Part shown: in pieces, positions 8,755 to 64,000 of the stretch
Layout of the letters: every line of letters begins with the position of its first letter
Position numbering within the stretch: the first letter of the stretch is position 1
Assembly (NCBI GenBank): GCA_965235115.1
Contig: OZ249436.1
Location: forward strand, 33,046,001-33,110,000
Source of the DNA: Laetmonice hystrix
Lineage: Eukaryota
Direction: 5' to 3'
Length of the DNA: 64,000 nt
Notes under the pieces: model-generated
The model's input: the letters and a program-made list of their open reading frames with translations, nothing else
What the model was told of the DNA's origin: nothing
The model's database searches: none
Translations under genes and position numbers: made by a program

Positions 8755-8892
8755 TTAACAAGACACTGCTCGCCCTCATTAGGCCTATAAAGGAGAAACT
8801 ACTCGAAAAATGAGTTTTCAACTAGAGTGAATCTTTTGAAAAAGGAATTACCAGAAATAATAATCTACTAATTTTGTCACACTATCTTGTGT

Positions 8893-11110
8893 TAGTGTGT
8901 TCTCTGGCACATCTCGTGTCAATGTGTTCTCTGGCACAACTCGCGTCAATGTTCTCTGGCACAACTCGTGTCAATGTGTTCTCTGGCACAACTCGTGTCA
9001 ATGTGTTCCCTGGCACATCTCGTGTCAATGTGTTCTCTGGCACAACTCGTGTCAATGTGTTCTCTGGCACATCTCGTGTCAATGTTCTCTGGCACAACTC
9101 GTGTCAATGTGTTCTCTGGCACATCTCGTGTCAATGTGTTCTCTGGCACAACTCGTGTCAATGTGTTCTCTGGCACAACTCGTGTCAATGTGTTCTCTGG
9201 CACAACTCGTGTCAATGTTCTCTGGTACAACTCGTGTCAATGTGTTCTCTGGCACAACTCGTGTCAATGTGTTCTCTGGCACAACTCGTGTCAATGTGTT
9301 CTCTGGCACAACTCGTGTCAATGTGTTCTCTGGCACAACTCGTGTCAATGTGTTCTCTGGCACAACTCGTGTCAATGTGTTCTCTGGCACAACTCGTGTC
9401 AATGTGTTCTCTGGCACAACTCGTGTCAATGTGTTCTCTGGCACAACTCGTGTCAATGTGTTCTCTGGCACAACTCGTGTCAATGTGTTCTCTGGCACAA
9501 CTCGTGTCAATGTGTTCCCTGGCACATCTCGTGTCAATGTTCTCTGGCACATCTCGTGTCAATGTTCTCTGGCACGACTCGTGTCAATGTGTTCCCTGGC
9601 ACATCTCGTGTCAATGTTCTCTGGCACAACTCGTGTCAATGTTCTCTGGCACATCTCGTGTCAATGTTCTCTGGCACAACTCGTGTCAATGTGTTCTCTG
9701 GCACAACTCGTGTCAATGTGTTCTCTGGCACAACTCGTGTCAATGTGTTCTCTGGCACGACTCGTGTCAATGTGTTCTCTGGCACAACTCGTGTCAATGT
9801 TCTCTGGCACAACTCGTGTCAATATGTTCTCTGGCACATCTCGTGTCAATGTGTTCTCTGGCACGACTCGTGTCAATGTTCTCTGGCACAACTCGCGTCA
9901 ATGTTCTCTGGCACAACTCGTGTCAATATGTTCTCTGGCACAACTCGTGTCAATGTTCTCTGGCACAACTCGTGTCAATATGTTCTCTGGCACATCTCGC
10001 GTCAATATGTTCTCTGGCACATCTCGTGTCAATGTGTTCTCTGGCACAACTCGTGTCAATGTGTTCTCTGGCACGACTCGTGTCAATGTGTTCTCTGGCA
10101 CATCTCGTGTCAATGTGTTCTCTGGCACAACTCGTGTCAATGTGTTCCCTGGCACGACTCGTGTCAATGTTCTCTGGCACAACTCGTGTCAATGTGTTCT
10201 CTGGCACATCTCGTGTCAATGTGTTCTCTGGCACAACTCGTGTCAATGTTCTCTGGCACATCTCGTGTCAATGTGTTCCCTGGCACGACTCGTGTCAATG
10301 TTCTCTGGCACAACTCGTGTCAATGTGTTCTCTGGCACATCTCGTGTCAATGTGTTCTCTGGCACAACTCGTGTCAATGTTCTCTGGCACATCTTGTGTC
10401 AATGTGTTCTCTGGCACGACTCGTGTCAATGTGTTCCCTGGCACATCTCGTGTCAATGTGTTCTCTGGCACGACTCGTGTCAATGTGTTCCCTGGCACAA
10501 CTCGTGTCAATGTGTTCTCTGGCACAACTCGTGTCAATGTTCTCTGGCACAACTCGTGTCAATGTGTTCTCTGGCACGACTCGTGTCAATGTGTTCCCTG
10601 GCACAACTCGTGTCAATGTGTTCTCTGGCACAACTCGTGTCAATGTGTTCTCTGGCACAACTCGTGTCAATGTGTTCTCTGGCACATCTCGTGTCAATGT
10701 GTTCTCTGGCACGACTCGTGTCAATGTGTTCCCTGGCACATCTCGTGTCAATGTGTTCTCTGGCACAACTCGTGTCAATGTTCTCTGGCACAACTCGTGT
10801 CAATGTGTTCTCTGGCACATCTTGTGTCAATGTGTTCTCTGGCACAACTCGTGTCAATGTGTTCTCTGGCACAACTCGTGTCAATGTGTTCTCTGGCACG
10901 ACTCGTGTCAATGTGTTCCCTGGCACATCTCGTGTCAATGTGTTCTCTGGCACAACTCGTGTCAATGTTCTCTGGCACAACTCGTGTCAATGTGTTCTCT
11001 GGCACAACTCGTGTCAATGTGTTCTCTGGCACAACTCGTGTCAATGTTCTCTGGCACAACTCGCGTCAATGTTCTCTGGCACAATTCGTGTCAATGTGTT
11101 CTCTGGCACA
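8893..11110. repeat. 27/25-bp minisatellite, ~2.2 kb, roughly 80-85 copies
   Basis: Unit gtgtcaat(gt)gttc(t/c)ctggcac(a/g)(a/t)ctc. The long ORFs in the track are translations of this unit. Confidence 0.97.
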
Positions 11111-11448
11111 TTGTTAGCGTTGTACATCCGTAGCCCTGTAATGAGACCCGCCACAATGTCCACCAACTGCCAGCTCCTTTTTGTTACGCAAGAAATGTGG
11201 TAGCATAGCAGCTTGGTCGACGCATCCATAATACATTACACGTATTGATGACGAGTCAACACCATATACATAGATTAATGATCGTCGAAGAGTCTCCACC
11301 GACGATATGGACTGGTTGAACCACATAATAGTTATTATGATAACAAAATGGGCGGGTCTGTTGGGCAAGTTTTTATTCAAATCGAGACAAAGGCAACCCA
11401 TGTCTGGGCCTTAAGATTCGTGATTTTTGTGATCTGAAAACCGCGGGA

Positions 11449-20627: not shown

Positions 20628-23600
20628 TTATTGATATTGCTGCAGTGCATCCGGCGCGTACTGCATGCCGAACGTCCTTCCGTCAATGGCGTTCATTGGT
20701 ACATGAACACGTTCACTGTTCACGCCCGACATGGCATGGCTAAACATGTTCACCGAAAGGTGGCGCCCCAGGACCGACTTGCCTCCCATGGACTTGGCGA
20801 ACGTCATGCAGATTGGCATCGTCAGTAACGGCACGGAGGGAGTGCGCAAAAACTGACCCTCGTAGTCGTCTCGGCAAAACGTCCCGTCCATTTCTGGTTT
20901 GGCATCAGGCATGAAGGGCAACGGCTCAACACCTATAAATTGGATATAAATTGGAATAATACAAACCCCAACCGGCAGTACAAAATTTCAAGCCTGTATA
21001 GCCCACACCAACAAAATGATTCTTAACAACTCATCTACGTTTTAGATGTATTTTCAACCAAACAAAAGTATAATACTGTTAGGTACAATCCGGCTTCACT
21101 TACTGTTAGGGACATTCTCTGGCAGCAGGGTTTCGTACGGTTTTTCGAGCGCCGCGTTGCGTCTATGTATCATCTTTGAGATAAAGGCCAACTGCTTTCG
21201 GAATTCATCGTGTGCCTGCTTGGCCTCGCGTTCCACGAAGTATGTCTCCGAACTGTGGCCAAGTGCGCTCTGGATTTTAATTTAGAACACTTTATTTGAT
21301 AAAATTGTAGTTATTGTAAAATATGCGAGGGTTATCCAACGGGGACAGGGACAGTCATAAAAGGGCACTATGCTGAGGGAGCCTTACCTGGTCCGCTTTC
21401 CTTATGGACATTATGTAAGCAATGGAGTTTTTGTATAAAGCCGGATTCTGGTCTGGTAGCGTTTGAACTGTCAGCTTCTTCTGCCCTAATCCCTTCGTGT
21501 TCGGCGGCGGCTTTTTCATCATTGCAGGAACCGAGGCGTCGTGTCCATACATGTCTATGGCCTGGCTGTGAGTGGCTGCATGCCGACAGGTGGTCGTGTA
21601 GAGTATCTTACTCACCAAGGCAGAGATTTCATTCCTGGTGCACAGACTCGCAGGAAGATCAATGTCAGCATGTTCACGGAAACCATTGTTCCGTATATCT
21701 TTGATCCACGCTTGGATCTCACAGTCGTTAACGACGTCCTCGTCTGATGGATAGAAATAGTTGATGAGTTTACCACAGTAGCGACAGATAACGTTCCACA
21801 GTCGGAGGCCGTCGTCGCGATAATAATAGTTGGTCAGTTTGTCGCCGACATGGACGCCACGTTTCCTGATGTCGGCGGTGAAGTCGAGGTCGTCCATTTT
21901 GAAGCGACTGTACAGTTTTCTGACGACCTGTTTGAAACCGTCACTGCCGAGAGAGGTCCACCGGTCGAGCGCGCCGCCCTTATTGAGCACGTGTGTCCTG
22001 ATCAGCCTGTTACCTGACAGTATGTACCTGTTTGGATAAGAACAATGACGACTTGGGCTTAGCGGGCTAAGGTCTACCACCACCCCGCCCCACCCCCTTC
22101 AGCCTTACAGATAGGGGCCTATAGGTGCCACCAATTTCTTCAGAGGGATATGGAAAAAATAATAGTTATCCCACCAACTTTTTCTCCTCACTTCTGTTTT
22201 ATAACAAAGAGGCACACGATAGAAAATAACATTGCCTCTATTCACCTGTTAAAATCTTACAATGAAACTTTTTTCGAGTTTTAACCCTTACTCCTAAGTA
22301 AGTGTTAATAAGTATACTAAGTTTTTTTACCGGAAGTGTGGTTTCAATAGTTTGTACACCGGATGCGACGAAGACAGTTGTCGCAAAGTTGCAACAACGA
22401 ACGGTTCGACCACCAGGTGGCAGTAAAACATGTGACTTGCCAGCTGTAGGAGGAAGTCGGCATGTCGTACCCAGAGTTTGGCCAGCAACCAATCATCCGC
22501 TGAATCTGACGAGGAACACTGTCAGTCAGCAGTCATGTTTTTATACAAATGTTAATATTGTCCCGAATATGTGTTTTTGATTGATCGAGCCATGGAATAA
22601 TATATTTTTGCGATGCAAAGGTTTAAGTTGCGTACTCGATTTCTCCTTTTTAAGCAGCGAGAAACGTAAAAGATCTATTTATGGCTTTCAAACTGCTTGT
22701 GCCATATGTAATATTTCACTGTATTTTAACAAAATAACTTGGTTACCTGTCGGCAAGAACAGAGGATTATCGTCTGCTGGGTGCTGTTTAAGCTGGATGG
22801 CCAGAGGTACAAGTTGTCCGGCGCTGTTCAAGTAGAGCAGTACCAGTGGCGCCGCGTGGTGCCGAGACTTGCTGTCTTTGGATGACGTCACCAACTGGTG
22901 CTCCAGGTCTTTGTAATCAGCCAGAAAGACGCGACCTACCTGGGGAATAAGAGATATGCATGTGAGAAAAAAAATCATGTTTGCCCATATTTACTACCAT
23001 TCACACCTTCAGACTACATAGTGTTTACGCAGGTTTGGCTCTTACTTTTCTTACTCACTTTTTCACTGTAACTTACCCGAAGTTCCTCACTAAAACTTAG
23101 TTCTCTCTCCATGAGTGGGTCCATGATATCGTCGTTGACTGGCAGATTCTCAGGGACGGTGCATAATCTCTTGATGACCAGCGGATTCGGTCCCTGTGTA
23201 AAGAGTCGACCAAATTCAGTATCGTCCATGCAGGCCCGACACATGTCCCCTTTTGGGCCGTCCGGGATTTTTGCCGACGCCTTTTTAATGAAGTATAAAA
23301 CGTTCCTGAGTTTGGACCACTTCCTCCGCGCTCTCCCCGTCAAGGACGTGTGACGTGGGACGAGGCCTGGAAGGATTGCTTTTCTGCTCGGCATGTTCTG
23401 GAAGGCTGTGGAGGCCCGCCGACCGTCCGGAGTGGTGGTCGGCTGGTGGTCCACGTACTGGTCACCTCCGTGGTGGAGGTGGTGGTGGTGATGGTGGTGG
23501 TGCGCCTGACACAGCGCCGCGTGGTGGTGGCTGTGGTTTCGCGGTTTCCCGGCCTGGGTGATTTCTGTCATGGTCATGTCGAGGTCCCACGGCAGGTAGG

Positions 23601-26600
23601 CGTACTTGTCGGCCAGCAAACGGTCGTCTGCCGGGAGGTCTTTGACCGAGGCTGCTAGGATGGCGCTCGGTAGGCCCTTTACCTGACAGAGTCAGTCGGG
23701 GCAAAATGATAGGAATACAAACAACGGAGTATTTTTAACATCACAAAGAATGGCCTTTCAAACTATGCTAGTCTGCTTTACGAAATAGACATCGCGATTC
23801 AGAAGGAAACTTATTTAGTAGGCCTACTGAGAATCCGTACCTTTCTCCAAAGATAAGCTTGTTGTCTGTTTCTTATTTCCAGGGCTCGTTCTTGACGCAG
23901 GACCTCATGAACTTCATGGTTGGGTAGGAGAACTAAAGAAAGAACAAAAATTCCATGGCGAATCATTCAAGACTATCATCTACACGGGGCATTGTGCGAG
24001 GAAGGCATATTGAAGAAAATAATTAACCATCGTGTACACGCAAGATAATTGCATCTCAGTGGAAGTTTATGAAGAGTGCTGCATATATCATCTTAATTCA
24101 AAAACCTGAAATTCAAAAGATTTTTCACAGTATCGTGAATGTCGCCTGTTTTGGTTAAGATATCAATCTGATACACTGACCGTTACCGGGACGGAGGGTA
24201 ACCTTGGAGAGTACCACCCTGTAGCAGGGGAAAAAACGAATATTGGCGGAGTCTATATCGGCGACACTGACGTAACCCAGCATCCAATCAGATGTCACTT
24301 GTCGGTGTCTCACACCAATCGTCACTGCTAAAATGGTGCCGACTGGTTCCACCCTTATCCGATAGAGGGCCCTGCCCTGGGTTTCCTTCCCGTCCAGCTT
24401 CATGTCAAGACGCTGTGGTGATGTTCGGCCCAGTGTTCCTGGCATTGATAAGAAACAGTATTAGCCTATACAATGCGTAATTATTACGTAATTTCTAAAG
24501 GAAGGAACTGCCAGGAGCCTATATTTTCAAACACATTATCCTGATCGTATAGACTTACAGTACAATATTTCTTGAATTTGTAGGCCTACATTCCCATATC
24601 TAAAAAAAACACAAATAAGGAAATATATGATTCTGAAGGGACGACTTTTTTTTATTATCTCCGATCAGTTTTGATGAACGGAGAATAGAAGTTGGGACTG
24701 CCACCTGTCAATGTGATGAATACGTCGACCCTTGGCTTTCCTTGCGTGCCGTGGCCAGTAGACAACGTTACCAAATAGGGCACCCTATCTCTGTGACTCA
24801 TCACGTCTGTGCTGTCGGCGTTGATTTGATTCATGTTCTTCAGTTCCATGGTGGTGTACATGGTAGAACAGGCTCTGTGGAAGCTCTTGCAATCCCACAC
24901 GGACACAGCTCGTTCTATGACGAGACATGGAGGTCGGTTAACGATGTTGAAGGCAGTTCTGTTTGTCGCCATAGGTGGCAGTGGTGTCGTGAATATCAGG
25001 TTCATCAGATGTAGCCATGGGGAGTTCTCTTCGTTCCATATCTATACTTGTAGAAGAATAGGAAATGTCAGGTAAAAATGATCGAGGCGGGTGTAGACAG
25101 TATAATAATGTATAAGCATAGGGCCACTAGACTCGATCCTTCCATTGTTATATTTTGCCTAATATCAATGTAGCCATTAAGATATACCTCATAATTTAGT
25201 AACATCAATCAAAGTTGAAATCACAAATAACCTCATAGGGAGGCTTAAAACAGCTGGGGCATCTTACCATCTGTGGACTCCACAAATCTAGATCTTCATC
25301 CGTGTTCAGATTATATACCTGAATCTGAAGAGCATATTGCACCGGCCGATCCTCTAGCCTTTTAGCGAATTCTTTCCTCAAATAATCCTCAGACTTATTG
25401 TTCCTTTTGTCCCGGTGGTATTCCCATGGAGTGTACTGTTGGTCCGCATCTAAAAGTCCCGATTCCATGCCTTGGTTATTTCCTGGGACCAGGCGAAACT
25501 TGGCCATGCGTGGTTTCTCGTCGACTGGTATGAATTTATAAGGAAGCTGGGAGTGGTACCGAAGTGTAGCGTACGAGTGAGGAGCTCGGCGTATGGCGTC
25601 TACCAACGCGAAGAAACTAGAAAGTGAGGGTAGAAACCCACCGACCGTCAGAAAGCGTGTTCTTACACAGACAATACAGACGGGAGAGGCCAGTTAACAA
25701 CTATGGAGGGAATACTTCTAGAAAAAGATGTTCCCCCATCCATCCTTTCGTATTGAGGCAGGTACAGCGTCTATCATATGGAATGCATACATCAATGCCT
25801 CACAACCCAATACCCCCTGGCTCCCCCATGCTGTCATGTACCATCCCCTTGCAAATTCTTGGGGGGGGGGGTGATAAGGTTGGGTCATGGTGAATTCACA
25901 GTAAAGTTGAGGTATATTAAAACCGATTCGTGGCCAAAAGGGAAGGTCGCCGCCTTTTATGAACGTTTATGGATTTTTATGCCGTAAACTCATGTTAGGA
26001 GACACATTTTGGAAGACGTTCACGAGGGGACTTACAAGTGCGGGTCCTTGTTGCAAAGGGCCATCATGCCATCAGGAGTTCGAGCGGCCATGACCTCCGA
26101 GAAGGTTTGACAGTTTCGGGCCAGGGCGACACGCCCAGTGAAGAGAAGGAGGTCAAACGGTCCATCCTCATTCTGATCGGCGAACTTGAGGGCAGCCTGA
26201 CGAGGGCACGAGGCGGCGTCATCCTCACATCGAATGGCGCAGTGTCTGCCGAAACGGGGGGAATTAAACCGAGCTTGAGGTCAAACTTGCTGTCAAAGGC
26301 GCATGAGATACATGAGATATTCCGACGTTGTTTATGAAATAAGGCTAAGAAGCCTACAATGCATATCAAATGCGCGTGTTTTTATTTGATCATATTATGT
26401 TTGTTTGCGTCATTGATTGGTCGGTTCAAGGCATGGTCAGGGGGCGAGAAAAGATGCTAAAACCCCATAACCTTATCGCTTATTTGGTTACTTAATGGTA
26501 AGTTGTCGATTTGTACCGATTGGTGGATGGCTTTTTTGTAGTTTGCTCGTTTGTTACCTTACCCCCCAAGGAGAGGGTTTCTAAGATTCTGTGGAACTGG

Positions 26601-27309: not shown

Positions 27310-27467
27310 TCTACAATTCATCCCAATTTTAATGTTTTAATTTGTAAGTCTTACCTTATCGGCATTATCAGTAATGTAGTGAACCATCATCCCACAAATA
27401 AGAATCGATTATCTTTAAGATATGAAAAAACACTTCCGCATCCCCTTATAATTCTGACTGCAGACTT

Positions 27468-28625
27468 GTTCTTGTAGGCCTGTAGATCTACTGACACGCT
27501 CACCTGGCTTCTGGTGTTGTGATGTGACACAACCATAAACTATCGCTGGTAGCATATCCACTATCCAGAAGACAACAGTGTCTTGTAGGCCTGTAGATCG
27601 ACTGACACGCTCACCTTGCGTCTTGTATTGTGATGTGACACAACCATAAACTATCGCTGGTAGCATATCCAGAAGACAACAGTGTCTTGTAGGCCTGTAG
27701 ATCTACTGACACGCTCACCTTGCGTCTTGTATTGTGATGTGACACAACCATAAACTATCGCTGGTAGCATATCCAGAAGACAACAGTGTCTTGTAGGCCT
27801 GTAGATCTACTAACACGCTCACCTGGCTTCTGGTGTTGTGATGTGACACAACCATAAACTATCGCTGGTAGCATATCCAGAAGACAACAGTGTCTTGTAG
27901 GCCTGTAGATCTACTGACACGCTCACCTTGCGTCTTGTATTGTGATGTGACACAACCATAAACTATCGCTGGTAGCATATCCACTATCCAGAAGATAACA
28001 GTGTCTTGTAGGCCTGTAGATCTACTGACACGCTCACCTTGCGTCTTGTATTGTGATGTGACACAACCATAAACTATCGCTGGTAGCATATCCAGAAGAC
28101 AACAGTGTCTTGTAGGCCTGTAGATCTACTAACACGCTCACCTGGCTTCTGGTGTTGTGATGTGACACAACCATAAACTATCGCTGGTAGCATATCCAGA
28201 AGACAACAGTGTCTTGTAGGCCTGTAGATCTACTGACACGCTCACCTTGCGTCTTGTATTGTGATGTGACACAACCATAAACTATCTCATGGTAGAATAT
28301 CCAGAAGACAACAGTGTCTTGTAGGCCTGTAGATCTACTGACACGCTCACCTTGCGTCTTGTATTGTGATGTGACACAACCATAAACTATCGCTGGTAGC
28401 ATATCCAGAAGACAACAGTGTCTTGTAGGCCTGTAGATCTACTGACACGCTCACCTTGCGTCTTGTATTGTGATGTGACACAACCATAAACTATCTCATG
28501 GTAGAATATCCAGAAGACAACAGTGTCTTGTAGGCCTGTAGATCTACTGACACGCTCACCTTGCGTCTTGTATTGTGATGTGACACAACCATAAACTATC
28601 GCTGGTAGCATATCCAGAAGACAAC
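27468..28625. repeat. 104-bp (104-111) tandem array, about 11 copies, just upstream of the first AOS-LOX coding exon
   Basis: Unit agaagacaacagtgtcttgtaggcctgtagatctactgacacgctcacc...gacacaaccataaactatcgctggtagcatatcc; starts at 27671, 27775, 27879 and onward. Confidence 0.95.
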
Positions 28626-31290
28626 CGTGCTGATGGTATGCATATTTCGACCGGAGTCAGACAGACGTCAACCAAACAAAAATTCCATGTCAATCTGAGA
28701 ACGGCTATAACAGTGTGCACTTAATTCGACATGTACAATAAAACTTGATTATACGTATATGAGAGGTATATATTTGTCGTGCCAGGTTGCCGCCATATAC
28801 GACTATTGCTGAGAAATAATCAGATATGAGATCAAGCATCAATCACTAATCTTCTTAATGCAGGCAATGTCAGGTCCGACGACCAGGCATTTTAAGGATA
28901 GACCTACCTGAGCTTCTATTTTCTGTTACAGATTGTTAAAGCGGGCATACCTTTCATTATGGCCGTATCTGGGACATAATTTCTCCACTGGCGAGTCATG
29001 ACTGCTCTCAACTTGGACAAAGAATGGATTTTAGTTGAGATACAGTGTAGTAAGTTAAATTGGGTTGTATACAGACCACGCAGAAACACTTTTTTTCTGT
29101 AGAATGGGGCCAAACATATACCGTATAATTCATTTCCAACTCGTTCCTCTATTCTTGCATATTTAAACGGTTAACTCTGAAGCATCACTCCTGATAAATA
29201 CAAGACGTTAGGTGGTTCAGTAATAGCAAGTCTGTGTTCCACCGGCTACAAGGCTGACCTGTCTGACAGGAGCCGGGGAGTGATGCCCCCGTGAGACCTC
29301 CAGTCCACTGATCCGCAGGGGATTGACGCCTAAGCGACGAAACTTTATCCTGATCCTTTTAAACCCTGCTGAAGTATGTAAAGTTGTAAACGTATCCTCT
29401 ACATAATGGCTGATCGCTGAAGCCATAAATAATATGCGGGGGCGGATCCAGACGCAATGTGTGCATGACCAGTTCAGACCAGCTAAGATTTTTATGCATT
29501 TTATCCACATTTTCTCCATGTCGGCCTAAAATTTTAATTAAAAAAGAAAACCTGGATGCCTGACTGGTTCACGTGAACTTTTTCATTTTCTTTTCATTTT
29601 TATGTGCTCGAAAGGCCAGGCCTTCTCCAAGTACTTGACTTTACATGTTTCTGGGTTACTTTACCATGGTACCGCTGCATATATATGTCGACACGTATAT
29701 ATGTGTGCAGTTGTAGTTAGTATTTAGACAAAGGCAAAGAACGTTATGACATTTACCTAATAGGAAGTATAGTAAAGTATATGTGAATTTCGTATACGAC
29801 CTATATGAGACAACTATGCTATTTTACAGGCTGGATTTTCTCTCTATAACTACTACATGTCAGGATCGCAAATAGAAGCATACCGTCCCTCGACTTCAAC
29901 TTCCTGGATTGTACCCAATGATTCCACCGTAGATCGCGCTTCCGCCAACCTCTTGGAGAAAGAGTTGTCCACCTCCAACAACACTTTACCATCCTTGATG
30001 CTCCACATGGTACTCGTTCCGATGGAACACGTGTCTTTGCACTCCTGTGATCTCAGGAGAGTGGCTCGGTAAGTTGTCCGAGAATACACCTAATTCTTCA
30101 CACCGGTCATGATCAAACATTTTGACCAGCACGCAAGTCCAGTCCAACAAACATGTATCCCTTTATCATTCATGACTTCTCCTTGATCGCATGTGATAGC
30201 TTCTCGCTTCATTTACACAGACTTCGCTCCGTACTGCCTACTACACAGACTCAGTGCCCAGTGTGACATGATCGCTGTTGTTTGCCAACCGGTGGTGCCT
30301 AATAGAGGTACGAACCTTTCCTTTGATCGTGTGATCGGCTAATGTCGCGGTAAGGTTTTAGGAGGCAGTCAAACCTGGATACGCCTCCCTTAACAAGTTA
30401 AGTAGGTATATGTGGGTGTGTAAGTATATCATCCAGTGGCGATATAGCTGCCAGAGAATGACCATATAAAAACGAGCTGAATAATCGGTGGTGAATGAAA
30501 TCATGGATAATAGTGGCCAACAGTTCTTGTTGTACGGCATGTCCTTGCCATTTGAATCATGTAAGAAGTGCGGATACATAGATTTCACACGTTATACTTT
30601 ATCTCACCAAGGCTGCCAATCTGCAACAAGCTCAACTAATGTTTACTTGCAACCTAAGTATTGGCCTCCTTAATCCTGACTTCTGTATCGAAAGATAACG
30701 GGAAAAGAAACGCAAAATCCTTTGGTTTATCAAGTGCAAAATATGTTATTATGACGTTAGACAAGTAGATCTATCAGTTTGGACACTCACAAAATATGGA
30801 AGATATCATTTTCTCTTAGATTGTGGTAGACTGTCTGGTTGACTGACCAAAATAGACATAGGCCTACTAGTAGTGCTTACAAGAGTTCTTCTACAATTAA
30901 TGCAATTGTCATAATCCTATTTGGGTGAGTTTATTAAATTTTCTCATCCGCTTTTAAAACAAAATCCATCGATTCGGTCGACAGCCATTTCTATAGTTGG
31001 TTTCATCTGTGCTTCTTTCTGTCTGTGGCTTCAGCCCATTTAAGATCGATAATAGACATTGAAGTACACGCAAACCTCTACCCTTTACCCTACAAAATAT
31101 ATTTCACAGCCAGGTCATGAATGTCTACATCACTATGGCTAACCTCCACCCCTTTACCTGCTACCCTGACTACCGATGTTATAGATTCCGATATGTTTGT
31201 ACTTGATGCTTCCATATACCGTGTCCCACACTGAACGGTCCACTCCCGGAAGCCCTGCGTCGACTTCAGACAGAGATGACATCTATGGCC

Positions 31291-32238
31291 AAGATTCGTC
31301 ACCATTGGAGATGTTGTTTTTCAGAGTTGATGGGTTCTCGCTGTGTGCAGACATGTAAAGATTCGTCACCATTGGAGATGTTGTTTGGAGTTGATGGGTT
31401 CTCGCTGTGTGCAGACATGTAAAGATTCGTCACCATTGATGGGTTCTCGCTGTGTGCAGACATGTAAAGATTCGTCACCATTGGAGATGTTGTTTGGAGT
31501 TGATGGGTTCTCGCTGTGTGCAGACATGTAAAGATTCGTCACCATTGGAGATGTTGTTTGGAGTTGATGGGTTCTCGCTGTGTGCAGACATGTAAAGATT
31601 CGTCACCATTGGAGATGTTGTTTGGAGTTGATGGGTTCTCGCTGTGTGCAGACATGTAAAGATTCGTCACCATTGGAGATGTTGTTTGGAGTTGATGGGT
31701 TCTCGCTGTGTGCAGACATGTAAAGATTCGTCACCATTGGAGATGTTGTTTGGAGTTGATGGGTTCTCGCTGTGTGCAGACATGTAAAGATTCGTCACCA
31801 TTGGAGATGTTGTTTTTCAGAGTTGATGGGTTCTCGCTGTGTGCAGACATGTAAAGATTCGTCACCATTGGAGATGTTGTTTGGAGTTGATGGGTTCTCG
31901 CTGTGTGCAGACATGTAAAGATTCGTCACCATTGGAGATGTTGTTTGGAGTTGATGGGTTCTCGCTGTGTGCAGACATGTAAAGATTCGTCACCATTGGA
32001 GATGTTGTTTGGAGTTGATGGGTTCTCGCTGTGTGCAGACATGTAAAGATTCGTCACCATTGGAGATGTTGTTTGGAGTTGATGGGTTCTCGCTGTGTGC
32101 AGACATGTAAAGATTCGTCACCATTGGAGATGTTGTTTGGAGTTGATGGGTTCTCGCTGTGTGCAGACATGTAAAGATTCGTCACCATTGGAGATGTTGT
32201 TTGGAGTTGATGGGTTCTCGCTGTGTGCAGACATGTAA
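31291..32238. repeat. 64-bp tandem array, about 15 copies, overlapping the 3' end of the 322-aa ORF
   Basis: Unit tggagatgttgtttggagttgatgggttctcgctgtgtgcagacatgtaaagattcgtcaccat; two 67-bp variants and one shortened copy. Confidence 0.97.
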
Positions 32239-33086
32239 GGAGTCCCGTCCACCGACCCCATGGTGGTCTGGGACGATTTAGATCGGAGTCGAGAGCGAGG
32301 CTGACCAGCAGACGGCGTCCGTTGCAACAGGATCTTGTAGGGTTTCCATTTTGGATGGTCCATATCTATTGGTGCATCCGAAAGACTATCCGATATCGAA
32401 TCGGTATTGAAATCGTCAAAGTTTTGTTTTTCTTTTACACTCTGGAGAAATGTGTCAAAATCTAATGTGCTCATCATGGGGTTCTCCTCTGGTTTCGGCG
32501 GCGCTCGACCTCTTTTTCTGAGGAGACCATTGGGTGGGGCGCTCCCAGGTGTGGTAATGGCAATCTCTCTGAGCGACTTCACAATTAATGATAATGGTGA
32601 TCTGTCTAGTGAATGTTTATGTTCGCGTACCGTCGGCATTCCTTCCAGAAGACTCGGTACGCGCTGACTATTTGCACGTGACGTAGTAACATATTCGGGT
32701 AGTCCCATTCGATCACTCGGGGTCAATCCCGTGTCTGTAACATCAAAATCATACCGTTCGGTTGCGTCTAGCACGTCTTTCCGAACGCTTCTCCTGACGT
32801 CATCAGTCAAGGCAGCGTCACCCAGAGCTCCGCGGTTATGTCTTGGGTTAGAACGTCTGAGAATGCTCAGTTCTCTGGGTAACTGTTCCTGGAAGTATAT
32901 CTCTCTGATCTTCTGCTGAATTCGATGTACTCTCCGACTGCACTTTCTCTCCAGGTCATCGACATGGGACTTGGTGGAGAGTGAGTGTGTCTGGTTTCGA
33001 CGATAAACTCGAAGGAATCGATCACTGTTGGACACGAGATCCACGGCTAAAACAGGCCGCCTCGACTTCCAACCGTATCCATCCAT
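32118..33086 (-). CDS. Intronless orphan ORF, 322 aa; N-terminal coiled-coil-like segment; C-terminus encoded inside the 64-bp array
   Basis: Non-repetitive open frame from 33086 to ~32238, then two repeat units. Segment DDLERKCSRRVHRIQQKIREIYFQEQL. Confidence 0.7.
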   Translation of the reverse strand: MDGYGWKSRRPVLAVDLVSNSDRFLRVYRRNQTHSLSTKSHVDDLERKCSRRVHRIQQKIREIYFQEQLPRELSILRRSNPRHNRGALGDAALTDDVRRSVRKDVLDATERYDFDVTDTGLTPSDRMGLPEYVTTSRANSQRVPSLLEGMPTVREHKHSLDRSPLSLIVKSLREIAITTPGSAPPNGLLRKRGRAPPKPEENPMMSTLDFDTFLQSVKEKQNFDDFNTDSISDSLSDAPIDMDHPKWKPYKILLQRTPSAGQPRSRLRSKSSQTTMGSVDGTPYMSAHSENPSTPNNISNGDESLHVCTQREPINSKQHLQW

Positions 33087-38388: not shown

Positions 38389-40840
38389 TTACCGCCGCCG
38401 GTTACCACCACCAGCCAGGATGGTCGCGATGCGGATAAAGATGTTGACTGTATCAAGGTAGATGCTGATAGAACTAGAAAACAAAGGAGAAGTTGGGATG
38501 ATTTATGTCTTTGACCAAAGAAAATCAAGATGTATTACGTTATACATGTACAGTATAGGCATCTTTATACATGTTTCATCATCCAGGGAGCATGGTAATG
38601 ATTGCTCTGTTAGTTTTATTATCAATTCTATGTTCACGTAGTGTTTGGAAGAAATAAAGCACGCTCCAACTGGTAAAATATACCTTGGTCTTATCAATAT
38701 GTACCTACTCTTTATACAAAACAACCATTGCTCAGGGGGGAAAAAACTTGCTTTAGATCTTCATTTGATATTCAACACTGAAGCATACATCAGTTGATAA
38801 TACAAGTTGGGCTGTGAATCACTGTATAATACACACTTGTTGACGGGGTCGTACGGTTGTGCTGCATAGACTGGATGAGTCTCGGCACGCTTGACGATCT
38901 TCTGGGTATCATAGAGGAGGAACATACTAAAGAGGACCAAACCTCCATACAAACTGATGGAGTAGAGGCCGGCACCTAGTGCTGTGGTTGGGGGCAGGAA
39001 GGCCGAACCTGGCGGAGATCAGGGATAAATATATACCGCTCGTAAATATATACTCGTCATTCTGGTTTATACTTAGCTTCTTATATGATAACAGGATGTG
39101 TAAACAAGTATAATATCTACTTTGAATTTACACATTTTCCATTGACAAAATTTTACCTATTTTATAGAGCCTGAGTCACTTACCAAGTGATGACACAAGG
39201 ACGACACCAAGCCCCATGGCGAGAGGTCCACCCATGTTTAAGAACTTCTCACTGGGTGCACACACAGCCAACGTTGACAGCCCTGTAACAGAGATCCCAA
39301 TAAATTATTAACCAAATAATATACAGGTACCATTACTTAAAATACACATCGATGATGACACAAACTCCCAGACCAAATGCTATAATGGCAGACCTACCAA
39401 CCACTGAATTTTAAAAACACACACCTCCATACTTTTTCCAAATAAATGGCAAGTTAATCTTACCCCCTACAACTCCGGCAGTGTAGCAAGCTGCCCTGAC
39501 CAGCAGGGGGCCTCCAAGGAGGGTGATGGGGGCCACTACAGCCCCAACCACACAACTATGTAACATCCACGCTAACTGTTTGGATCCAAATCCTGGCTGG
39601 TAGGGGATAGACCTGGCAACCATTCCTGTCCCGATCATGGCCACAATGGATGCAATGATCGACTTAAATTAAAAATACAATGAAATGGGACATCATCTTA
39701 GGACTTCAATACAATCTTTAGAGCATATCTACAAAGACCCTAAAATTTACATTTAAATCTGTAGTTCTGTACTCTTTGTGAAGTCAGTCTGCTCACTCAG
39801 ACCTTTGTGAAGTCTTTCCAAAATGGCCACTAGTTACACTAAACAAGCCTTTCGTTTGTCCTCTGCCAAAAACTGTACATTTCAAAATCCCCAGAATATA
39901 ATATATCAGATGGCAAATATTTCAAAGAATAGTATACCAACAACAAAATTCTTACCACCCATGAATTTTTCATCATTATGCTCATCATTCGTGGACTTCG
40001 AGAAATTGCTACAGCTGTTCCAGCGGTGAAGACTAGACTACTTCCAAAGTACAAATATGTATCTCTGATACGAGCTTTGACAACATCTGGCCATATCCTT
40101 TTAAAGAAAAATAATTGATGGTTAATTTAGATTACAACTGTGAACAATAATAAATACACTGTAAACATTACACTTTTCCTTGTAACATGTTTGTGTAACA
40201 TTCATTGTGTAAAGTGAAGACATGATTCTTACCCTGCTCGGTCAATGGCTCCAACCTCATTTGACATACCAAGTCCATAGTAACATAGTGCTCCGAGGCC
40301 AAGAACTGATGAACCTGCCACTAAACCTTTGCCTATTGTGAATGCTGAAAACGAAGAAACAAAAACCAGAATAAGTATGACTGTCACCTCCAAAAACTGT
40401 TCCTACATGGTTCTTCTTGAGTATGAGCTAAAATTGGATAGCACCTGTAGCTAATGGTCTCTACTGGTGGAGAACGTTTACAGTTCTAAGGCCAATTGGG
40501 AATAACCATTCTTTGGTATCAATGTGCCCAACAACATGATTATGTGTCCCTGTAACCAGTTAAATAACAAATTACTATTCTATGAAAGCCTTTACAATGT
40601 AATTTGTTTGTAAAACTTAGTTTAACATAAATCCACTCTCTGACCTGAATCTCCTGCTGGTGCACTAATCCTCTCACGTAAGGTGGGTGTTTTTACCCGT
40701 CTCAGTCCAGATGTGCGGCTTTGCGTGGCCATCTGTCTTGACAATACACATTGTACATTTCTCGGTGCAGAGACCACAGGTCGCGACAGCGCCGTCACAA
40801 AGGTGGTCAGTGGAATGGTGCTTAACCTTGCCGCCAACAT
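38389..40840 (-). CDS. GHITM: Growth hormone-inducible transmembrane protein (GHITM/MICS1/TMBIM5), 334 aa
   Basis: 7 phase-compatible coding exons: 40645-40840, 40233-40344, 39956-40097, 39464-39662, 39184-39282, 38837-39008, 38389-38473 (1005 nt). Motifs MLAARL, GLGALCYYGLGMSNEVGAI, APSEKFLNMG, YGGLVLFSMFLLYDTQK, YDPVN..SIYLDTVNIF..GGNRRR closely match GHITM. Confidence 0.96.
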
Positions 40841-46339: not shown

Positions 46340-49300
46340 CTACAACCAGGATCCCATCTCCTTCTCAATGATTCCGGCGGCGTCCATACGACCCATGACC
46401 CGGAGAGAGTTCATAAGATCTGTGATTGCCGATTCCTCTCTGTGCCGTGCCTCCCACAGGTCAAGGATGTGTTCGGTGGGGCTCGGCTTGGTGGCAAAGT
46501 AGTTAATATACCTGCAATAACAATATCAGGCAGCATCAGTTAGTATTCGTTTACAATAGGCCTAGATGGAACGCTAAACATTTGAAGAACTCAGTTCAAA
46601 CTCTCTTCTAGTAGGCTAATCCTTCTAGCGCTTTTTCCAGTTTAGTCTTACAGTGTGAAGAAATGTTTCTTTGAAAATGTTGTGGATCGAATATTGTTCA
46701 CTCACCTGTCAACGGACAGTCTTTGTGCTAACATCCTCCAATCATTGCCGCGCATGTTGGGAGGATCTAACAGAGCACACAGGTGTTGTTTGATGTGTAA
46801 TGGCAATCTGTCAAACACACAAAACGTTACAGTTAAACATTGTCTATGTGACACACTTCTCTTAAACTCATACCATGTAATATCATATCAAGTAGATCAA
46901 TGATTGACTAATAAAACCACGACTAAACAGGTTTGTATTTTAAACAAAACTGGACAGTTAATAGTGGCATGTAGTTTAGGTGAAAGATTGCGTATTGTAC
47001 CTGAACACATGTTGCGGTGGTTCTAAAGAAACTACAGAGTTACATGGGCCGGCTTGTGATGTGACTGTTGAATTACGCTGATACATCGGCTTTGACATTA
47101 CTGCAGGACTAGCCAGTTTCTGAAAACAGACAATTCGGGTAAAATCATATGCATGAGAAGGCAAGTAGCAGAAATATCAGAAGATGATCACTTGGCGGGT
47201 CGCGTCGCTCAAACGATCGATCGACCTGCCACCTGGAGGCAAAATCACGTAGCTGTACCGCCCCCTAGCGTTTATTTCGTGCAACATTCAGGAACATATT
47301 GGTTCTCTTGCACGAAGCCGAACATCACTTCTGTTATCTCTTCAGCCCTTTCCACAGTATTCTCGTTCAGTGACGTAGCCACCATAGGGCGTACCAGGCG
47401 TACGCCCCCCCCCCCCGTTTGGTTTTTTTTGCTTGCCAGCATTGTTGAAGACCTTTTTTTTTGCTTGTCAGATTTTCCTTACAAGATTTACGCCCCCCCT
47501 TTCATTCCTGGCTACGTCACTGTCGCTCCTCCATTTATCTCTTTCCGTAACTCCCTTTCTCCTTAAAAAAATCAAGATCATACTTTCTCTAAAACAAAAA
47601 CAAAACCGCTCAATAGGGGCGTATTATAGGCCTCATAGTTTTTGTTAAATTCCTCTCCTTTTGGCTGATAAGACAAACTGCTGAAACCTTCTATTTCCGG
47701 GCAGTAGAAAGTTCCAGCCCGATGACCCCGTGCCGGCCGTGGGTCGATTGGTCGGCTTGCTGGGACTCTGGCCCGGGGTGATGGGACACACCATCCTGTC
47801 CCCCAGCTGACGACTGGCCAGTCGGCTTGCTGGGACTCTGGCCCGGGGTGATGGGACACACCATCCTGTCCACCAGCTGACGACTGGCCAGTCGGCTTGC
47901 TGGGACTCTGGCCCGGGGTGATGGGACACACCATCCTGTCCACCAGCTGACGACTGGCCAGTCGGCTTGCTGGGACTCTGGCCCGGGGTGATGGGACACA
48001 CCATCCTGTCCACCAGCTGACGACTGGCCGGTCGGCTTGCTGGGACTCTGGCCCGGGGTGATGGGACACACCATCCTGTCCCCCAGCTGACGACTGGCCG
48101 GTCGTCTTGCTGGGACTCTGGCCCGGGGTGATGGGACACACCATCCTGTCCCCCAGCTGACGACTGGCCGGTCGGCTTGCTGGGACTCTGGCCCGGGGTG
48201 ATGGGACACACCATCCTGTCCCCCAGCTGACGACTGGCCGGTCGTCTTGCTGGGACTCTGGCCCGGGGTGATGGGACACACCATCATGTCCCCCAGCTGA
48301 CGACTGGCCGGTCGGCTTGCTGGGACTCTGGCCCGGGGTGATGGGACACACCATCCTGTCCACCAGCTGACGACTGGCCAGTCGGCTTGCTGGGACTCTG
48401 GCCCGGGGTGATGGGACACACCATCCTGTCCCCCAGCTGACGACTGGCCGGTCGTCTTGCTGGGACTCTGGCCCGGGGTGATGGGACACACCATCCTGTC
48501 CCCCAGCTGACGACTGGCCGGTCGGCTTGCTGGGACTCTGGCCCGGGGTGATGGGACACACCATCATGTCCACCAGCTGACGACTGGCCAGTCGGCTTGC
48601 TGGGACTCTGGCCCGGGGTGATGGGACACACCATCCAGTCCACCAGCTGACGACTGGCCAGTCGGCTTGCTGGGACTCTGGCCCGGGGTGATGGGACACA
48701 CCATCATGTCCACCAGCTGACGACTGGCCAGTCGGCTTGCTGGGACTCTGGCCCGGGGTGATGGGACACACCATCCTGTCCCCCAGCTGACGACTGGCCA
48801 GTCGGCTTGCTGGGACTCTGGCCCGGGGTGATGGGACACACCATCCTGTCCCCCAGCTGACGACCACAGCGGTTCTGTGATGGTATCAGCGTGAAGTCCC
48901 AGGATGACAGTAGGCCTAATTCAGGTGTCCCTGTGTGATGGACTGGTTGGGGACAGTGACAGCATGGACGGGGCGGCGGCTTTAATAGTGCACACCTGCC
49001 CACTAGGGTGACACTCGGTACAACCCCCGCCCCCACACCCCTAACCCTCATGAACACATACCGGCCGGTCGGGGTGCATACTTCCCCAGGCCTACTAACG
49101 TGGAACTGGCAAACAGTTGGAGCGCATCAAGACAGAGATGAATGGCTCGCCAGGCACACTGTGAGTCGTTGTTATAGTGGAGGTCTGCTCGCGAAGGTAA
49201 CATCTATGGTTATAGTCCCAGCATGACCTGACCTCCTCAATGATTTGTTGTACCTGAGGCACGTGTTTCACCCTGTGTATACATTACACTGTGAGTCGTT

Positions 49301-52300
49301 GTTATAGTGGAGGTCTGCTCGCGGAGGTAACATCTATGGTTATAGTCCCAGCATGACCTGCTCGCGGAGGTAACATCTATGGTTATGGTCCCAGCATGAC
49401 CTGACCTCCTCAATGATTTGTTGTACCTGAGGCACGTGTTTCACTATGTGTATACATTACACTGTGAGTGGTTGTTATAGTGGAGGTCTGCTCGCGGAGG
49501 TAACATCTATGGTTATAGTCCCAGCATGACCTGACCTCCTCAATGATTTGTTGTACCTGAGGCACGTGTTTCACTATGTGTATACATTACACTGTGAGTG
49601 GTTGTTATAGTGGAGGTCTGCTCGCGGAGGTAACATCTATGGTTATAGTCCCAGCATGACCTGACCTCCTCAATGATTTGTTGTACCTGAGGCACGTGTT
49701 TCACTATGTGTATACATTACACTGTGAGTCGTTGTTATAGTGGAGGTCTGCTCGCGGAGGTAACATCTATGGTTATAGTCCAAGCATGACCTGACCTCCT
49801 CAATGATTTGTTGTACCTGAGGCACGTGTTTCACCCTGTTTATACATTACAGGCGGTTTCAGTGCCACAGCGGCCTAATAGTGGCAATAACAACGAACAT
49901 CTTCGACATCATCTGTATTTTCCACATGTGCTCATAGGCCAATGCCCTTCATTGAGATAAATCGCTTTAAAAAGCCATTAAAAACTGAACGAGAATTGTA
50001 TGTCAACAAGAAATGTCAAACGTCACGGCTTTGAGTCAACTTTTATCTTTTAGCACAATATAATTTGATAGCCTCCATGGAGGTAATCGAGACCATTCGT
50101 TCCCTGATCCAGGTGGGGCCGAGCTACTATTTCATTACTGATAAGGACCACGCAACGACGATATATTTATAGGGTGTTAACAAATGTATCCCCGCCCTCC
50201 CTCAAGAAATATACATATTGCTCAGTACTTTCTTAGACCTGAACAGTCTTGAGATCAGATACAGGGGCCTCTATTCACATATAAATACCTGTCTCTACGT
50301 CTCTAAATACACACACTGTTTGAGAGGAGAAACTGTTCGCAGCTGACTGCCTACAGATAAGGGTTCTCAACGGGAGCGGTGTATCCTCAATATGTCAACT
50401 TTTACAGGAGTCACCTTCCTATAAATATTCAGGAGCGGACCTCAATGGCCGGTCACTATGGGAGACGTTCAATGTACCGGCGGTATAGGTCAGGACTGGA
50501 GGGTCAGCCTGACCGTCCTGCCCGCTGAAGGACTGCTCAGTGGACAATACAAGCAGACGATGGGTATCTTTACTTCAACTCAACCAAAGCCTCTCTCCTC
50601 CTAATCTACCCTCCCCAATCTTACCATTTATTTCACCGACACTTTAAACCTATATCTCCACCCATTTTACTACTGTTCTTCCTGACATGAAACGACTGAC
50701 AGGTTGCTGTGCTAGGCCGTAAATCAGACTGTAGATTCTAACCATGCACCTGCACAGTGATTGTACAGGTGAACCCCGAACAGTTACGTTTCAGGTGTAA
50801 TCTTTGGATTCTCAGGTATCGAGCCCAGACTACCACCGGGTGACCCGTTCATAACGATATCACCCACACAGTGCTGTGAATGGATGACCACCGGAGAATC
50901 CAGACTATAAGATCATTACTCAGTGCAGAACATTATCTCGGAACACGTGTGTTTCAAACTCTCAACAATAAGCCAGTAAACTGCCACCACACACAGTAAC
51001 TTACGGACTTATCGGAATAACCTTTGACCGTGCGCTGGAACAAGCTCGATCATTTCAACTCCCATCGAATCAAAGCTCTACAATAGAATCCTCCTCCCGA
51101 CATATTCCCCCACAGCGGCCCACCTGTTCTATACCTTATCACATGCACAGAGATCGCCAGTCTCTACTGGCCACCGCGTCATTCAGTAAATCACTGGCAT
51201 CCTTCACTGCCGATCATTATCACCGGCCGCCGGTGACAACCCCAGACTCGTCACTGTAACCCGATCCGCAAGGGTTGGGTGGGGTGGGGGGACTGACTAC
51301 CGGCGATTGGTAACTCTACGGGTTCCACCCCTTCATCATTTACCTATCACCATCCGTCCCCACCGAAACTCAGGACATACAGTCTATAGACATATAGTAT
51401 GTGTCGACATATATGCCGACATATGTAAGAGTTTTCAGCTTATACCAAGGAAGTTATCTTTGTCTGCGCCTGCTGCCCTGACTCCGTGGGTCTATAATGA
51501 TATATCGGTATGACATTAAGCTACGCTGGACAAATAAAATTGATTTATTTGCACCATTAAATCCAGTCAGAACACAGGTTGTTTGTTGGACATGGTCATT
51601 TACCCACAATAAGTGTATTATCAGCTAGGACCGCGTGTATCTCATGTAGCCTGCAGGAAAACATTTACATCTCAACCGGCCGTGGCCCTGTCTCAGTGAA
51701 CTCGATTGTCAGTGTGAAAACCTTTGCTAACCTCTAATTTACACACACTGTTCGAACTCTGGCAACCTGCCATACGATCGACGTGCAACATATGCCAACA
51801 CAAAAGAGTAATTATCATGGAAAAACCTTATAGTGTGACGTCCATATGTGAAGGCTATACCGTGTGAAAAAAATATACATGAAAAATAATTTAAAAAAGT
51901 ATCTTAGTCTTGCCGTGAATGACAATTATATGAATGCAGCTTACCTCTTTGAGATTAGCACTGATTGTGAGGACTTGTCTATTGGCAAGTAACGATTTTT
52001 GGAACACGTGGATGTTACAGCTCAGCCGTTGTTGACTCCGCTCAATGTGCTCCAAGGCAAACGAACAGTGCAAGCCGTTTTGTGTACCACTCCATATATG
52101 TCGGAAAGGAATTTCCTGCAAAACAAGAAGTCAATGTGCGAGGTTGAGTTAGGTTATCAGGATTGGCAGATAGGTGAATACTAAATATTCTACGTAATAA
52201 ATGCGTGAAGGTTCACTGTGACAGATAGGTGAATACCAAATATTCTATGTAATAAATGTGTGAAGGTTCACTCTGACAGATAGGTGAATACCAAATATTC

Positions 52301-63680: not shown

Positions 63681-64000
63681 CTGGAACACACCAAGACAGT
63701 CTTCTATCAGTACTCCGTGATGAGGCATTCAATGAGAACATTGACATGAGGTACTGCATCCCGACTGTGATGAAGCATTTAATCACTTCATTTATATGAG
63801 GCACACACACAATACATCTGACCACTGTCACTGCACAGAAATATCTAATGGAATGCAGTCATAAAGCGAGCATACGTTAACTTTAACAACGTAAAACATA
63901 AGTGCCTATCATTTCAACCGTAGATTTATCTATCCGTTCTCAATCGTCCCACTTGGGAGGAGTATTCCACCTAATAAACAGCCTAACTGCCTGTAAATTT

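Follow-up and report, generated by a model that had tools for sequence, protein, structure and literature searches.

We examined a 64,000-nucleotide stretch of the genome of Laetmonice hystrix (assembly GCA_965235115.1, contig OZ249436.1, forward-strand positions 33,046,001 to 33,110,000), which is called the window below and to which all coordinates refer unless stated otherwise. On its minus strand the window carries a multi-exon lipoxygenase (LOX) gene, and one coding exon of this gene contained about 70 residues that have no counterpart in canonical LOXs. These residues lie between the equivalent of helix alpha2 of human 5-LOX (ALOX5, PDB 3O8Y) and a conserved tryptophan-bearing helix. The reading we prefer, with a probability of roughly 0.5, is that they form a translated, family-specific and disordered insertion after the alpha2 lid of the enzyme, in which a phospho-regulated motif block would stand beside a charge-inverted helix.

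Position and coding status of the insert

The exon and the elements that delimit the insert were located as follows.

23077..23682, minus strand: coding exon of the LOX gene (the focal exon), an open frame of 202 codons with phase 0 at both ends.
23554..23640, minus strand: helix-alpha2 equivalent, amino acids (aa) 15-43 of the exon, DLPADD to TEITQ, the N-terminal anchor of the insert, aligned by hhalign onto ELPRN...YINRF of 5-LOX.
23335..23553, minus strand: family-specific insert, aa 44-116, predicted to be disordered and with no canonical LOX counterpart.
23077..23265, minus strand: start of the LOX core, PDGPKGDMC to EELR, with aa 148-201 matched to 5-LOX 241-294 (tagged numbering) by a phmmer search against PDB (E 3.8e-5).

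A profile-profile comparison (hhalign) between an alignment of the subfamily, A1, and an alignment of seven canonical LOXs, A2, gave a probability of 99.4 and left ~70 residues between alpha2 and the Trp helix without a canonical counterpart. The stretch from the DLP motif to the conserved Trp measured 107 aa in the window and 36-37 aa in the seven canonical LOXs, and because of this difference the ~70-aa insert is taken to be real. The exon departed from canonical LOXs not only in this spacing but also in its helix, which carries Asn at Trp+5, where Asp is invariant in A2. A first-pass annotation of the window had described a low-complexity insert of roughly 80-90 aa between these two landmarks and within a single exon; its position is confirmed here, its length was measured at ~70 aa (aa 44-116), and it was found to be common to the family. 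The flanks of the insert aligned with alpha2 (ELPRN...INRF) and with the SSW...EKIF helix of 5-LOX, and aa 148-201, the sole part of the focal exon that phmmer aligned against PDB, with the NHWQED...LEQEV core of the same enzyme. In contrast, only ~6 residues separate alpha2 from the Trp in 5-LOX, compared to ~76 here.

Helix alpha2 of 5-LOX comprises residues 176-195 and forms, with the neighboring loop, a flexible lid over the active site (PMC11311652), and helix 2 is regarded as the gatekeeper of the portal through which substrates enter the LOXs of plants and animals (PMC7436259). As the insert adjoins alpha2, it can be placed in the short loop with which this lid ends on its C-terminal side. 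An AlphaFold 2 model of the focal exon, for which A1 served as the alignment, gave predicted local distance difference test (pLDDT) values of 42 to 50 and no secondary structure for aa 44-112, followed by one long helix at aa 113-135; the model is of the isolated exon, has a mean pLDDT of 55.5 and was used for disorder and helix calls only. A low-complexity surface insert of 31-41 aa, rich in Pro and Arg and of unknown function, is present in the catalytic domain of the epidermal enzymes 12R-LOX and eLOX3. That insert differs in being Pro-rich and in its place directly behind the beta-barrel; among the sequences of A2, those resembling ALOXE3 had no insert at the loop between alpha2 and the Trp helix.

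The coding status of the insert was assessed from composition and splice signals. A 95-codon stretch around it (exon aa 31-125) had a GC content of 0.64 and a GC content at third codon positions (GC3) of 0.79, both above those of the flanks of the exon. All in-frame GT..AG pairs inside the insert stretch were listed, and none was credible, there being no GTRAGT donor and no polypyrimidine acceptor among them. An internal intron within the insert was rejected on the grounds of the exon-like composition and the absence of a convincing donor or acceptor. Public contigs matched both flanks exactly, but all of them broke at the His repeat (23463-23508), which leaves the precise His codon count without independent confirmation. 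From the composition and the splice signals we infer that the insert is translated in this species.

Conservation, serine sites and histidine tract

A search of 1.84 billion representative proteins yielded 41 matches, mostly open frames of ~200 aa on genomic contigs of other animals, and in these animals the frames homologous to the focal exon were also open. The linker between the anchors was present as an open frame in 13 of 13 distinct relatives that keep both anchors, with lengths ranging from 42 to 162 aa. The closest relative with DNA, a 4.4-Mb ENA contig (L003), had the region divided among three exons whose splice sites fit the consensus. The first of these encoded alpha2 and a His7-GG tract; the second was a discrete exon of ~58 aa, flanked by introns of 1.5 and 1.9 kb, that contained the serine motifs and the basic helix; and the third encoded the GDMCR... 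core. Since a small conserved exon between introns is hard to explain otherwise, the C-terminal half of this region is likely to be translated in the L003 species.

On the same contig (L003:5941-6380), the intron upstream of the motif and helix exon contained a partial, decayed copy of the serine-motif block, ~330 nt upstream of the real exon. The copy reads MGRRRSMPTRKASMVLRRSSTSSAM and then diverges, has no helix and lies within the open frame of P0025; its nature may be that of a pseudo-exon or of an alternative exon.

The sole named full-length relative was Helobdella robusta HELRODRAFT_66358 (P0035), which aligned from the catalase-related part of the protein through PLAT and LOX with 28-58% identity and shared the KY....WEVD anchor and the KLPDGSPGDMC core. 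It differed in that residues ~455-480 jump from the WEVDPKLIDFFRE anchor to FRFRLASKLPDG, without the linker and without the universally conserved Trp. Because this Trp is also missing from the model, the gap is probably an annotation artefact, and an in-frame piece was probably removed from the gene model as an intron. A protein search with region 380-640 of P0035 detected no further full-length family member, an ESM Atlas search with the focal exon gave no usable match, and a protein search with A1 was dominated by low-complexity words, adding a single new sequence.

Conservation along the exon was examined by aligning the five closest taxa, namely, the window, spliced L003 (first two exons), P0020 plus P0008, P0001 and P0005. 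Identities to the window in this alignment were as follows.

Flank before the insert: 40-60% (three taxa).
His-rich half of the insert: 10-39%.
Motif block, aa 85-116: 25-48%.
Helix: 57-70% in three taxa and 22% in P0005.

The following serine sites were distinguished in the motif block.

23407..23421, minus strand: Site A, RRAST, aa 88-92, a basophilic kinase consensus (scripted motif check).
23368..23388, minus strand: relic of Site B, SRKAILP, that is, RxxSxP with Ile for Ser (comparison with relatives).
23344..23358, minus strand: Site C, PRHTS, in which Ser113 precedes the Trp by nine residues (five-taxon alignment).

At Site A, the first Arg was invariant, the second position was Arg or Lys, and a Ser or Thr followed in all five taxa. 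The RxxSxP motif of Site B was the best-conserved linker motif across the subfamily, with R100 nearly invariant in A1, and was represented in relatives by RRQASVP, RQVSAP, RRMSSTP, RRQNSAP and RTNSTP. At Site C, Ser113 was invariant in the five taxa with an Arg at -2 or -3, the strings being KRMSL (P0001), RRSS (the L003 species), HRDSL, ARTSM and RHTSL. Composition-preserving shuffles of the 13 linkers were used to estimate how often such patterns would be expected. The pattern R[RK]x1-2[ST] was present in 11 of the 13 linkers compared to 3.6 expected, and [RK][RK]x[ST] occurred 10 times compared to 3.3 expected (P of about 0.002), figures which are indicative only, as the linkers are related and have a high Arg and Ser content, so that shuffle P values overstate independence. 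The first-pass annotation had named conservation of the insert as a check on its proposals, and the outcome was favorable for the C-terminal half, which was not unconserved, RRxS-type sites being enriched and partly conserved there.

The RRxS consensus of cyclic AMP-dependent protein kinase (PKA) was found at RRAS (aa 88-91), and RKWS (aa 120-123) also matches it. However, RRAS is followed by Thr, unlike the hydrophobic +1 residue that PKA prefers, while at Site C (RHTS-L) the +1 residue is Leu and the sole Arg is at -3. The PKA site of the first-pass annotation thus stood as a conserved type of motif and fell short at the +1 position. Human 5-LOX is regulated by kinases, including through a PKA site at Ser523, and its known phospho-sites lie elsewhere in the fold. 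The pattern of invariant and enriched residues makes phospho-regulation of the insert serines plausible.

The N-terminal half of the insert contained the histidine tract.

23470..23538, minus strand: His-rich part, reading NHSHHH, then H8-L-HH, then GG (codon reading).
23521-23538, minus strand: NHSHHH, aa 49-54 (scripted motif check).
23470-23502, minus strand: HHHHHHHHLHH, aa 61-71 (scripted motif check).

Runs of His were detected at the equivalent place in three of the five closest taxa, comprising the window (H3, H8-L-HH and GG), L003 (H7 and GG) and P0001 (H5); none was detected at that place in P0020, P0005 or more distant relatives. The runs were encoded by nearly pure codon repeats, with seven CAC and one CAT within the H8 of the window, six CAC and one CAT in L003 and five CAT in L001. 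Judged by codon use and distribution, the tract is a slippage-prone triplet-repeat signature that is restricted to certain lineages and is not a family feature. Binding of metals by the His tract, as put forward in the first-pass annotation, is possible but conjectural.

The basic helix and alternative explanations

The helix that follows the insert had been singled out in the first-pass annotation as a calmodulin (CaM)-binding-like element of the insert itself.

23266..23334, minus strand: basic amphipathic Trp helix, aa 117-139, with an AlphaFold 2 helix at aa 113-135 and its Trp placed by hhalign on the Trp of the 5-LOX SSW helix.
23281-23334, minus strand: RARRKWSKLRNVLYFIKK, aa 117-134, the string named in the first-pass annotation (scripted motif check).

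A scripted position check found this string, both His motifs and RRAS(T), the four motifs that had been named, where they had been reported. In the comparison of A1 with A2, the Trp of RRKW landed on the Trp of 5-LOX QSSWSDFADFEKIF, and the helix aligned with the canonical LOX SWxxFxDF helix (SSW-S-DFADFEKIF in 5-LOX). The consensus over 18 subfamily sequences was AR.RW.K-h-(K/R).A-h.FI.K, and in an ungapped reading the hydrophobic positions W1, L4, V7, F10 and I11 matched W1, F4, F7, I10 and F11 of 5-LOX. As the hydrophobic spacing matches that of the canonical helix, one face is probably packed into the fold, and this face is most likely not free for wrapping by CaM. A distinct difference was detected in charge. 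The net charge from Trp-5 to Trp+13 was +2 to +8 (median of about 6) in the subfamily and -1 to -4 in canonical LOXs; the 5-LOX helix is acidic, with a net charge of -1, compared to about +8 for the helix of the window. On this alignment, the Trp helix is an ordinary LOX structural helix turned basic, and the charge of the exposed face is the new part.

The motif classes recognized for CaM binding include 1-8-14, 1-5-10 and 1-10. With a net charge of about +8 and a hydrophobic moment (muH) of 0.46, the helix had the basic amphipathic character of CaM-binding sequences. The 1-8-14 and 1-5-10 anchors were absent, since position 5 from W122 is Arg and position 14 is Ala; the IQ motif was also unmatched, and only the loose 1-10 class matched, through a W and F pair. 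The CaM-binding peptide of smooth-muscle myosin light-chain kinase (MLCK) and phospho-regulated effector domains of the MARCKS type likewise have a basic amphipathic helix anchored by Trp with adjacent basophilic Ser sites, and the ARRKW.K string matches the MLCK peptide as quoted in the first-pass annotation. The helix described here differs from these in being a structural helix of the LOX fold without 1-8-14 anchors, and no homology is implied. The supposed CaM-binding element is thus not part of the insert but is the canonical LOX Trp helix, with its hydrophobic spacing kept and a fit to only the loosest CaM class. A literature search for an interaction between LOXs and CaM returned nothing relevant.

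The CaM genes of this genome were multi-exon. Dozens of CaM or CaM-like exons were observed on one chromosome (contig C5, ~3.4-23.9 Mb; L006, L008, L009, L011 and L015), many of them nearly identical to the canonical GNGTIDFPEFL...VNYE, which suggests extensive tandem duplication of CaM-like genes on this contig.

In the reading that we prefer, the N-terminal half of the insert would be freely evolving low-complexity sequence, with a His run that would have arisen by codon slippage here and in two relatives. The C-terminal half would be a region of short linear motifs, with two or three serine sites for basophilic kinases (RRxS; RxxSxP, which is lost here; and Rx(x)S-L-T) abutting the next helix. 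Phosphorylation of serines beside the polybasic helix would act as an electrostatic switch, altering the docking of the loop and helix, either to acidic membranes or to the surface of the enzyme itself, and the changed docking would reset the position of the alpha2 lid and alter substrate access. The His run would most likely be a tolerated lineage-specific extra, perhaps sensitive to metals or pH. Both the phosphorylation and any effect on lid or membrane are inferred. Several observations weigh against this reading. The AlphaFold 2 model of the isolated exon was of low confidence throughout (mean pLDDT of 55.5), and among the public sequencing runs (three, from one sample) none was recorded as RNA, with contigs that also cover introns. 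The Ser of Site B is lost in this species (RKAILP, with Ile instead of Ser), and the Thr after RRAS is not the hydrophobic residue favored by PKA. The enrichment figures are affected by the composition and kinship of the linkers, and the widest pattern, R[RK]x1-2[ST], was picked after inspection of the data. Finally, the one annotated full-length relative, that of Helobdella robusta, is without linker and Trp, either through an artefact of the model or because the enzyme can do without them.

A tolerated expansion of a surface loop, in which neutral low-complexity sequence accumulated at a permissive site and the Arg/Ser motifs reflect composition and shared ancestry, is a serious but lesser possibility. 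The strong variation in linker length (42-162 aa), an identity in the His-rich half of at most 35% even to the closest relative, the nearly pure CAC or CAT repeats, the loss of the Site B Ser and the Helobdella model without a linker would all be expected from such an expansion. It does not readily account for motif enrichment above composition-matched shuffles, for an Arg and Ser113 that are invariant across five taxa in a block of 25-48% identity, for the retention of the motif block as its own exon in L003 or for the loss of the linker in none of the relatives that have both anchors. The conserved serines directly before the helix would be left unexplained if the polybasic helix docks on acidic membranes without a phospho-switch and the loop is only a spacer. 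The consistent charge inversion in 18 sequences suits membrane docking, as do the position of the helix beside alpha2, itself turned toward the substrate portal, and the fact that animal LOXs work at membranes, with PLAT- and Ca2+-dependent membrane binding (PMC7436259); the orientation of the helix relative to the membrane face is, however, only assumed, and we consider this explanation improbable.

Slightly better placed, though still unlikely, is the proposal that the Trp helix is a Ca2+/CaM site and that Ca/CaM and PKA jointly control the enzyme. The basic charge and amphipathicity of the helix, the conservation of its basic character across the family, the ARRKW-K shared with the smooth-muscle MLCK peptide and the hydrophobic residues at 1 and 10 are in its favor, but the alignment with the canonical SW..F.DF..IF helix at equal hydrophobic spacing, with one face probably packed, the unmatched 1-8-14, 1-5-10 and IQ motifs (Arg and Ala at positions 5 and 14) and the empty literature search argue against it. 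Lastly, the insert might be absent from the mature protein, as an exitron, as an intron retained in frame or through an error of assembly. Public runs with none recorded as RNA, contigs that break at the His repeat and a Helobdella model that skips the region would permit this, whereas the GC and GC3 values above those of the flanks, the lack of an internal GTRAGT donor or polypyrimidine acceptor, the open linker frame in 13 of 13 distinct relatives and the separate conserved exon for the C-terminal half in L003 make it very improbable.

The preferred reading, a disordered insertion with a phospho-regulated motif block, can be taken further. A spiralian-specific clade of catalase-LOX proteins might have a built-in signaling module at the lid, in which a kinase-switched loop (possibly with a 14-3-3-type RxxSxP) controls the polybasic helix, oxylipin synthesis is gated by kinase or Ca2+ signaling and the His run adds metal or pH sensing in this lineage. 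We regard this extension as speculative and rather doubtful, and we know of no studied lipoxygenase in which such a gating mechanism has been seen.

Gene architecture and implications

The focal exon was bounded on the minus strand by an acceptor (cag, 23683-23685) and a donor (gtaagt, from 23076), and its neighbors were as follows.

23841..23932, minus strand: preceding exon, LLPNHEVHEVLRQERALEIRNRQQAYLWRK, with splice consensus and joined to the focal exon in open frames of relatives (P0042).
22739..22939, minus strand: following LOX exon, VGRVFLADYK to LFLPTGNQ, with an acceptor ag at 22940-22941 and a tblastn match with P0035 and P0056.

Pfam analysis detected a PLAT domain (PF01477) on the exon at 24158-24460 with an E value of 8.2e-5, above the cut-off, and a LOX catalytic domain (PF00305) on the exons at 22330-22521 (E 6e-17) and 21358-22098 (E 2e-20). 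A further PF00305 match on 22691-22990 was weak and below threshold (E 0.001; 18.1 bits, with the cut-off at 23.6). The LOX identity of the focal exon was also indicated by its alignment with 5-LOX in PDB and by the hhalign probability of 99.4. Upstream exons (~25.2-26.3 kb) aligned with the catalase-related part of P0035 and P0056; a Pfam scan of the upstream exons of the window gave no catalase match. By these domain matches and alignments, the multi-exon gene has a catalase-related, PLAT and LOX architecture, and it was single-copy in the 627-Mb genome. The same order of domains is found in the AOS-8R-LOX fusion of the coral Plexaura homomalla (PDB 3DY5 and 3FG1), to which weak PDB matches were obtained, and in the Logan protein P0056 (1028 aa), which has the architecture of the AOS-LOX fusion and aligned along the gene. 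P0056 differs in its ordinary spacing between alpha2 and the helix, its acidic SFDSFEDF helix and its lack of the insert, His tract and RRxS block.

Comparison with P0056 by tblastn (22330-22521 and 21358-22098, minus strand) showed that the four side-chain positions for iron ligands were all His, with S-H-MFYC-H paired with T-H-LTRG-H and R-H-AAT-H with F-H-AAV-N. The LOX frame ends in ...LLPENVPNSK with a stop at 21102, compared to a usual end of ...PNS-I/V-x-I (minus strand; regions 21102-21281 and 20631-20987). The C-terminal ligand would thus be the sole iron ligand in question, and the LOX active site does not otherwise look degenerate. The suggestion that the protein is a signaling pseudoenzyme with degenerate active sites found no support on the LOX side.

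Some further features of the window were observed. Relative to the window assembly, an extra TA follows position 23014 in all three sets of public contigs; this site lies in the intron downstream of the focal exon. Neighboring genes on the minus strand, recognized from open frames only, resembled a Bax-inhibitor membrane protein of the GHITM/TMBIM5 type (~38764-40402) and an UNC5-like receptor with ZU5 and death-domain exons (46343-63858). Long minisatellite arrays that were open in several frames were present at 8885-11235, 27418-28656, 31302-32365 and 47581-49846, with units such as ...VPENTLTR..., ...CAREHIDTS... and ...TSPMVTNLYMSAHSENPS....

A literature search detected no description of the insert or of a bilaterian family of catalase-LOX fusions (molluscs and annelids). 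Within the known LOX family, this lipoxygenase represents a new form, in which the lid is accompanied by a loop that is predicted to be disordered, carries motifs and is specific to its family, and by a helix of inverted charge. Even if the loop is only tolerated, the result is of use for annotation, as gene models such as that of Helobdella probably cut this region wrongly. The value of the finding lies mainly in the position of the loop and in the concrete, testable sites that it offers. Control of LOXs is exerted largely through access to a buried active site, for which alpha2 is the recognized gatekeeper, and a conserved, disordered and phosphorylatable loop together with a helix of inverted charge, both placed where the lid ends, would, if the preferred reading is correct, be a natural system for the coupling of lid and signaling. 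To our knowledge, the regulation of oxylipins in annelid-type animals is essentially unstudied, and the insert would then provide a first handle on it.

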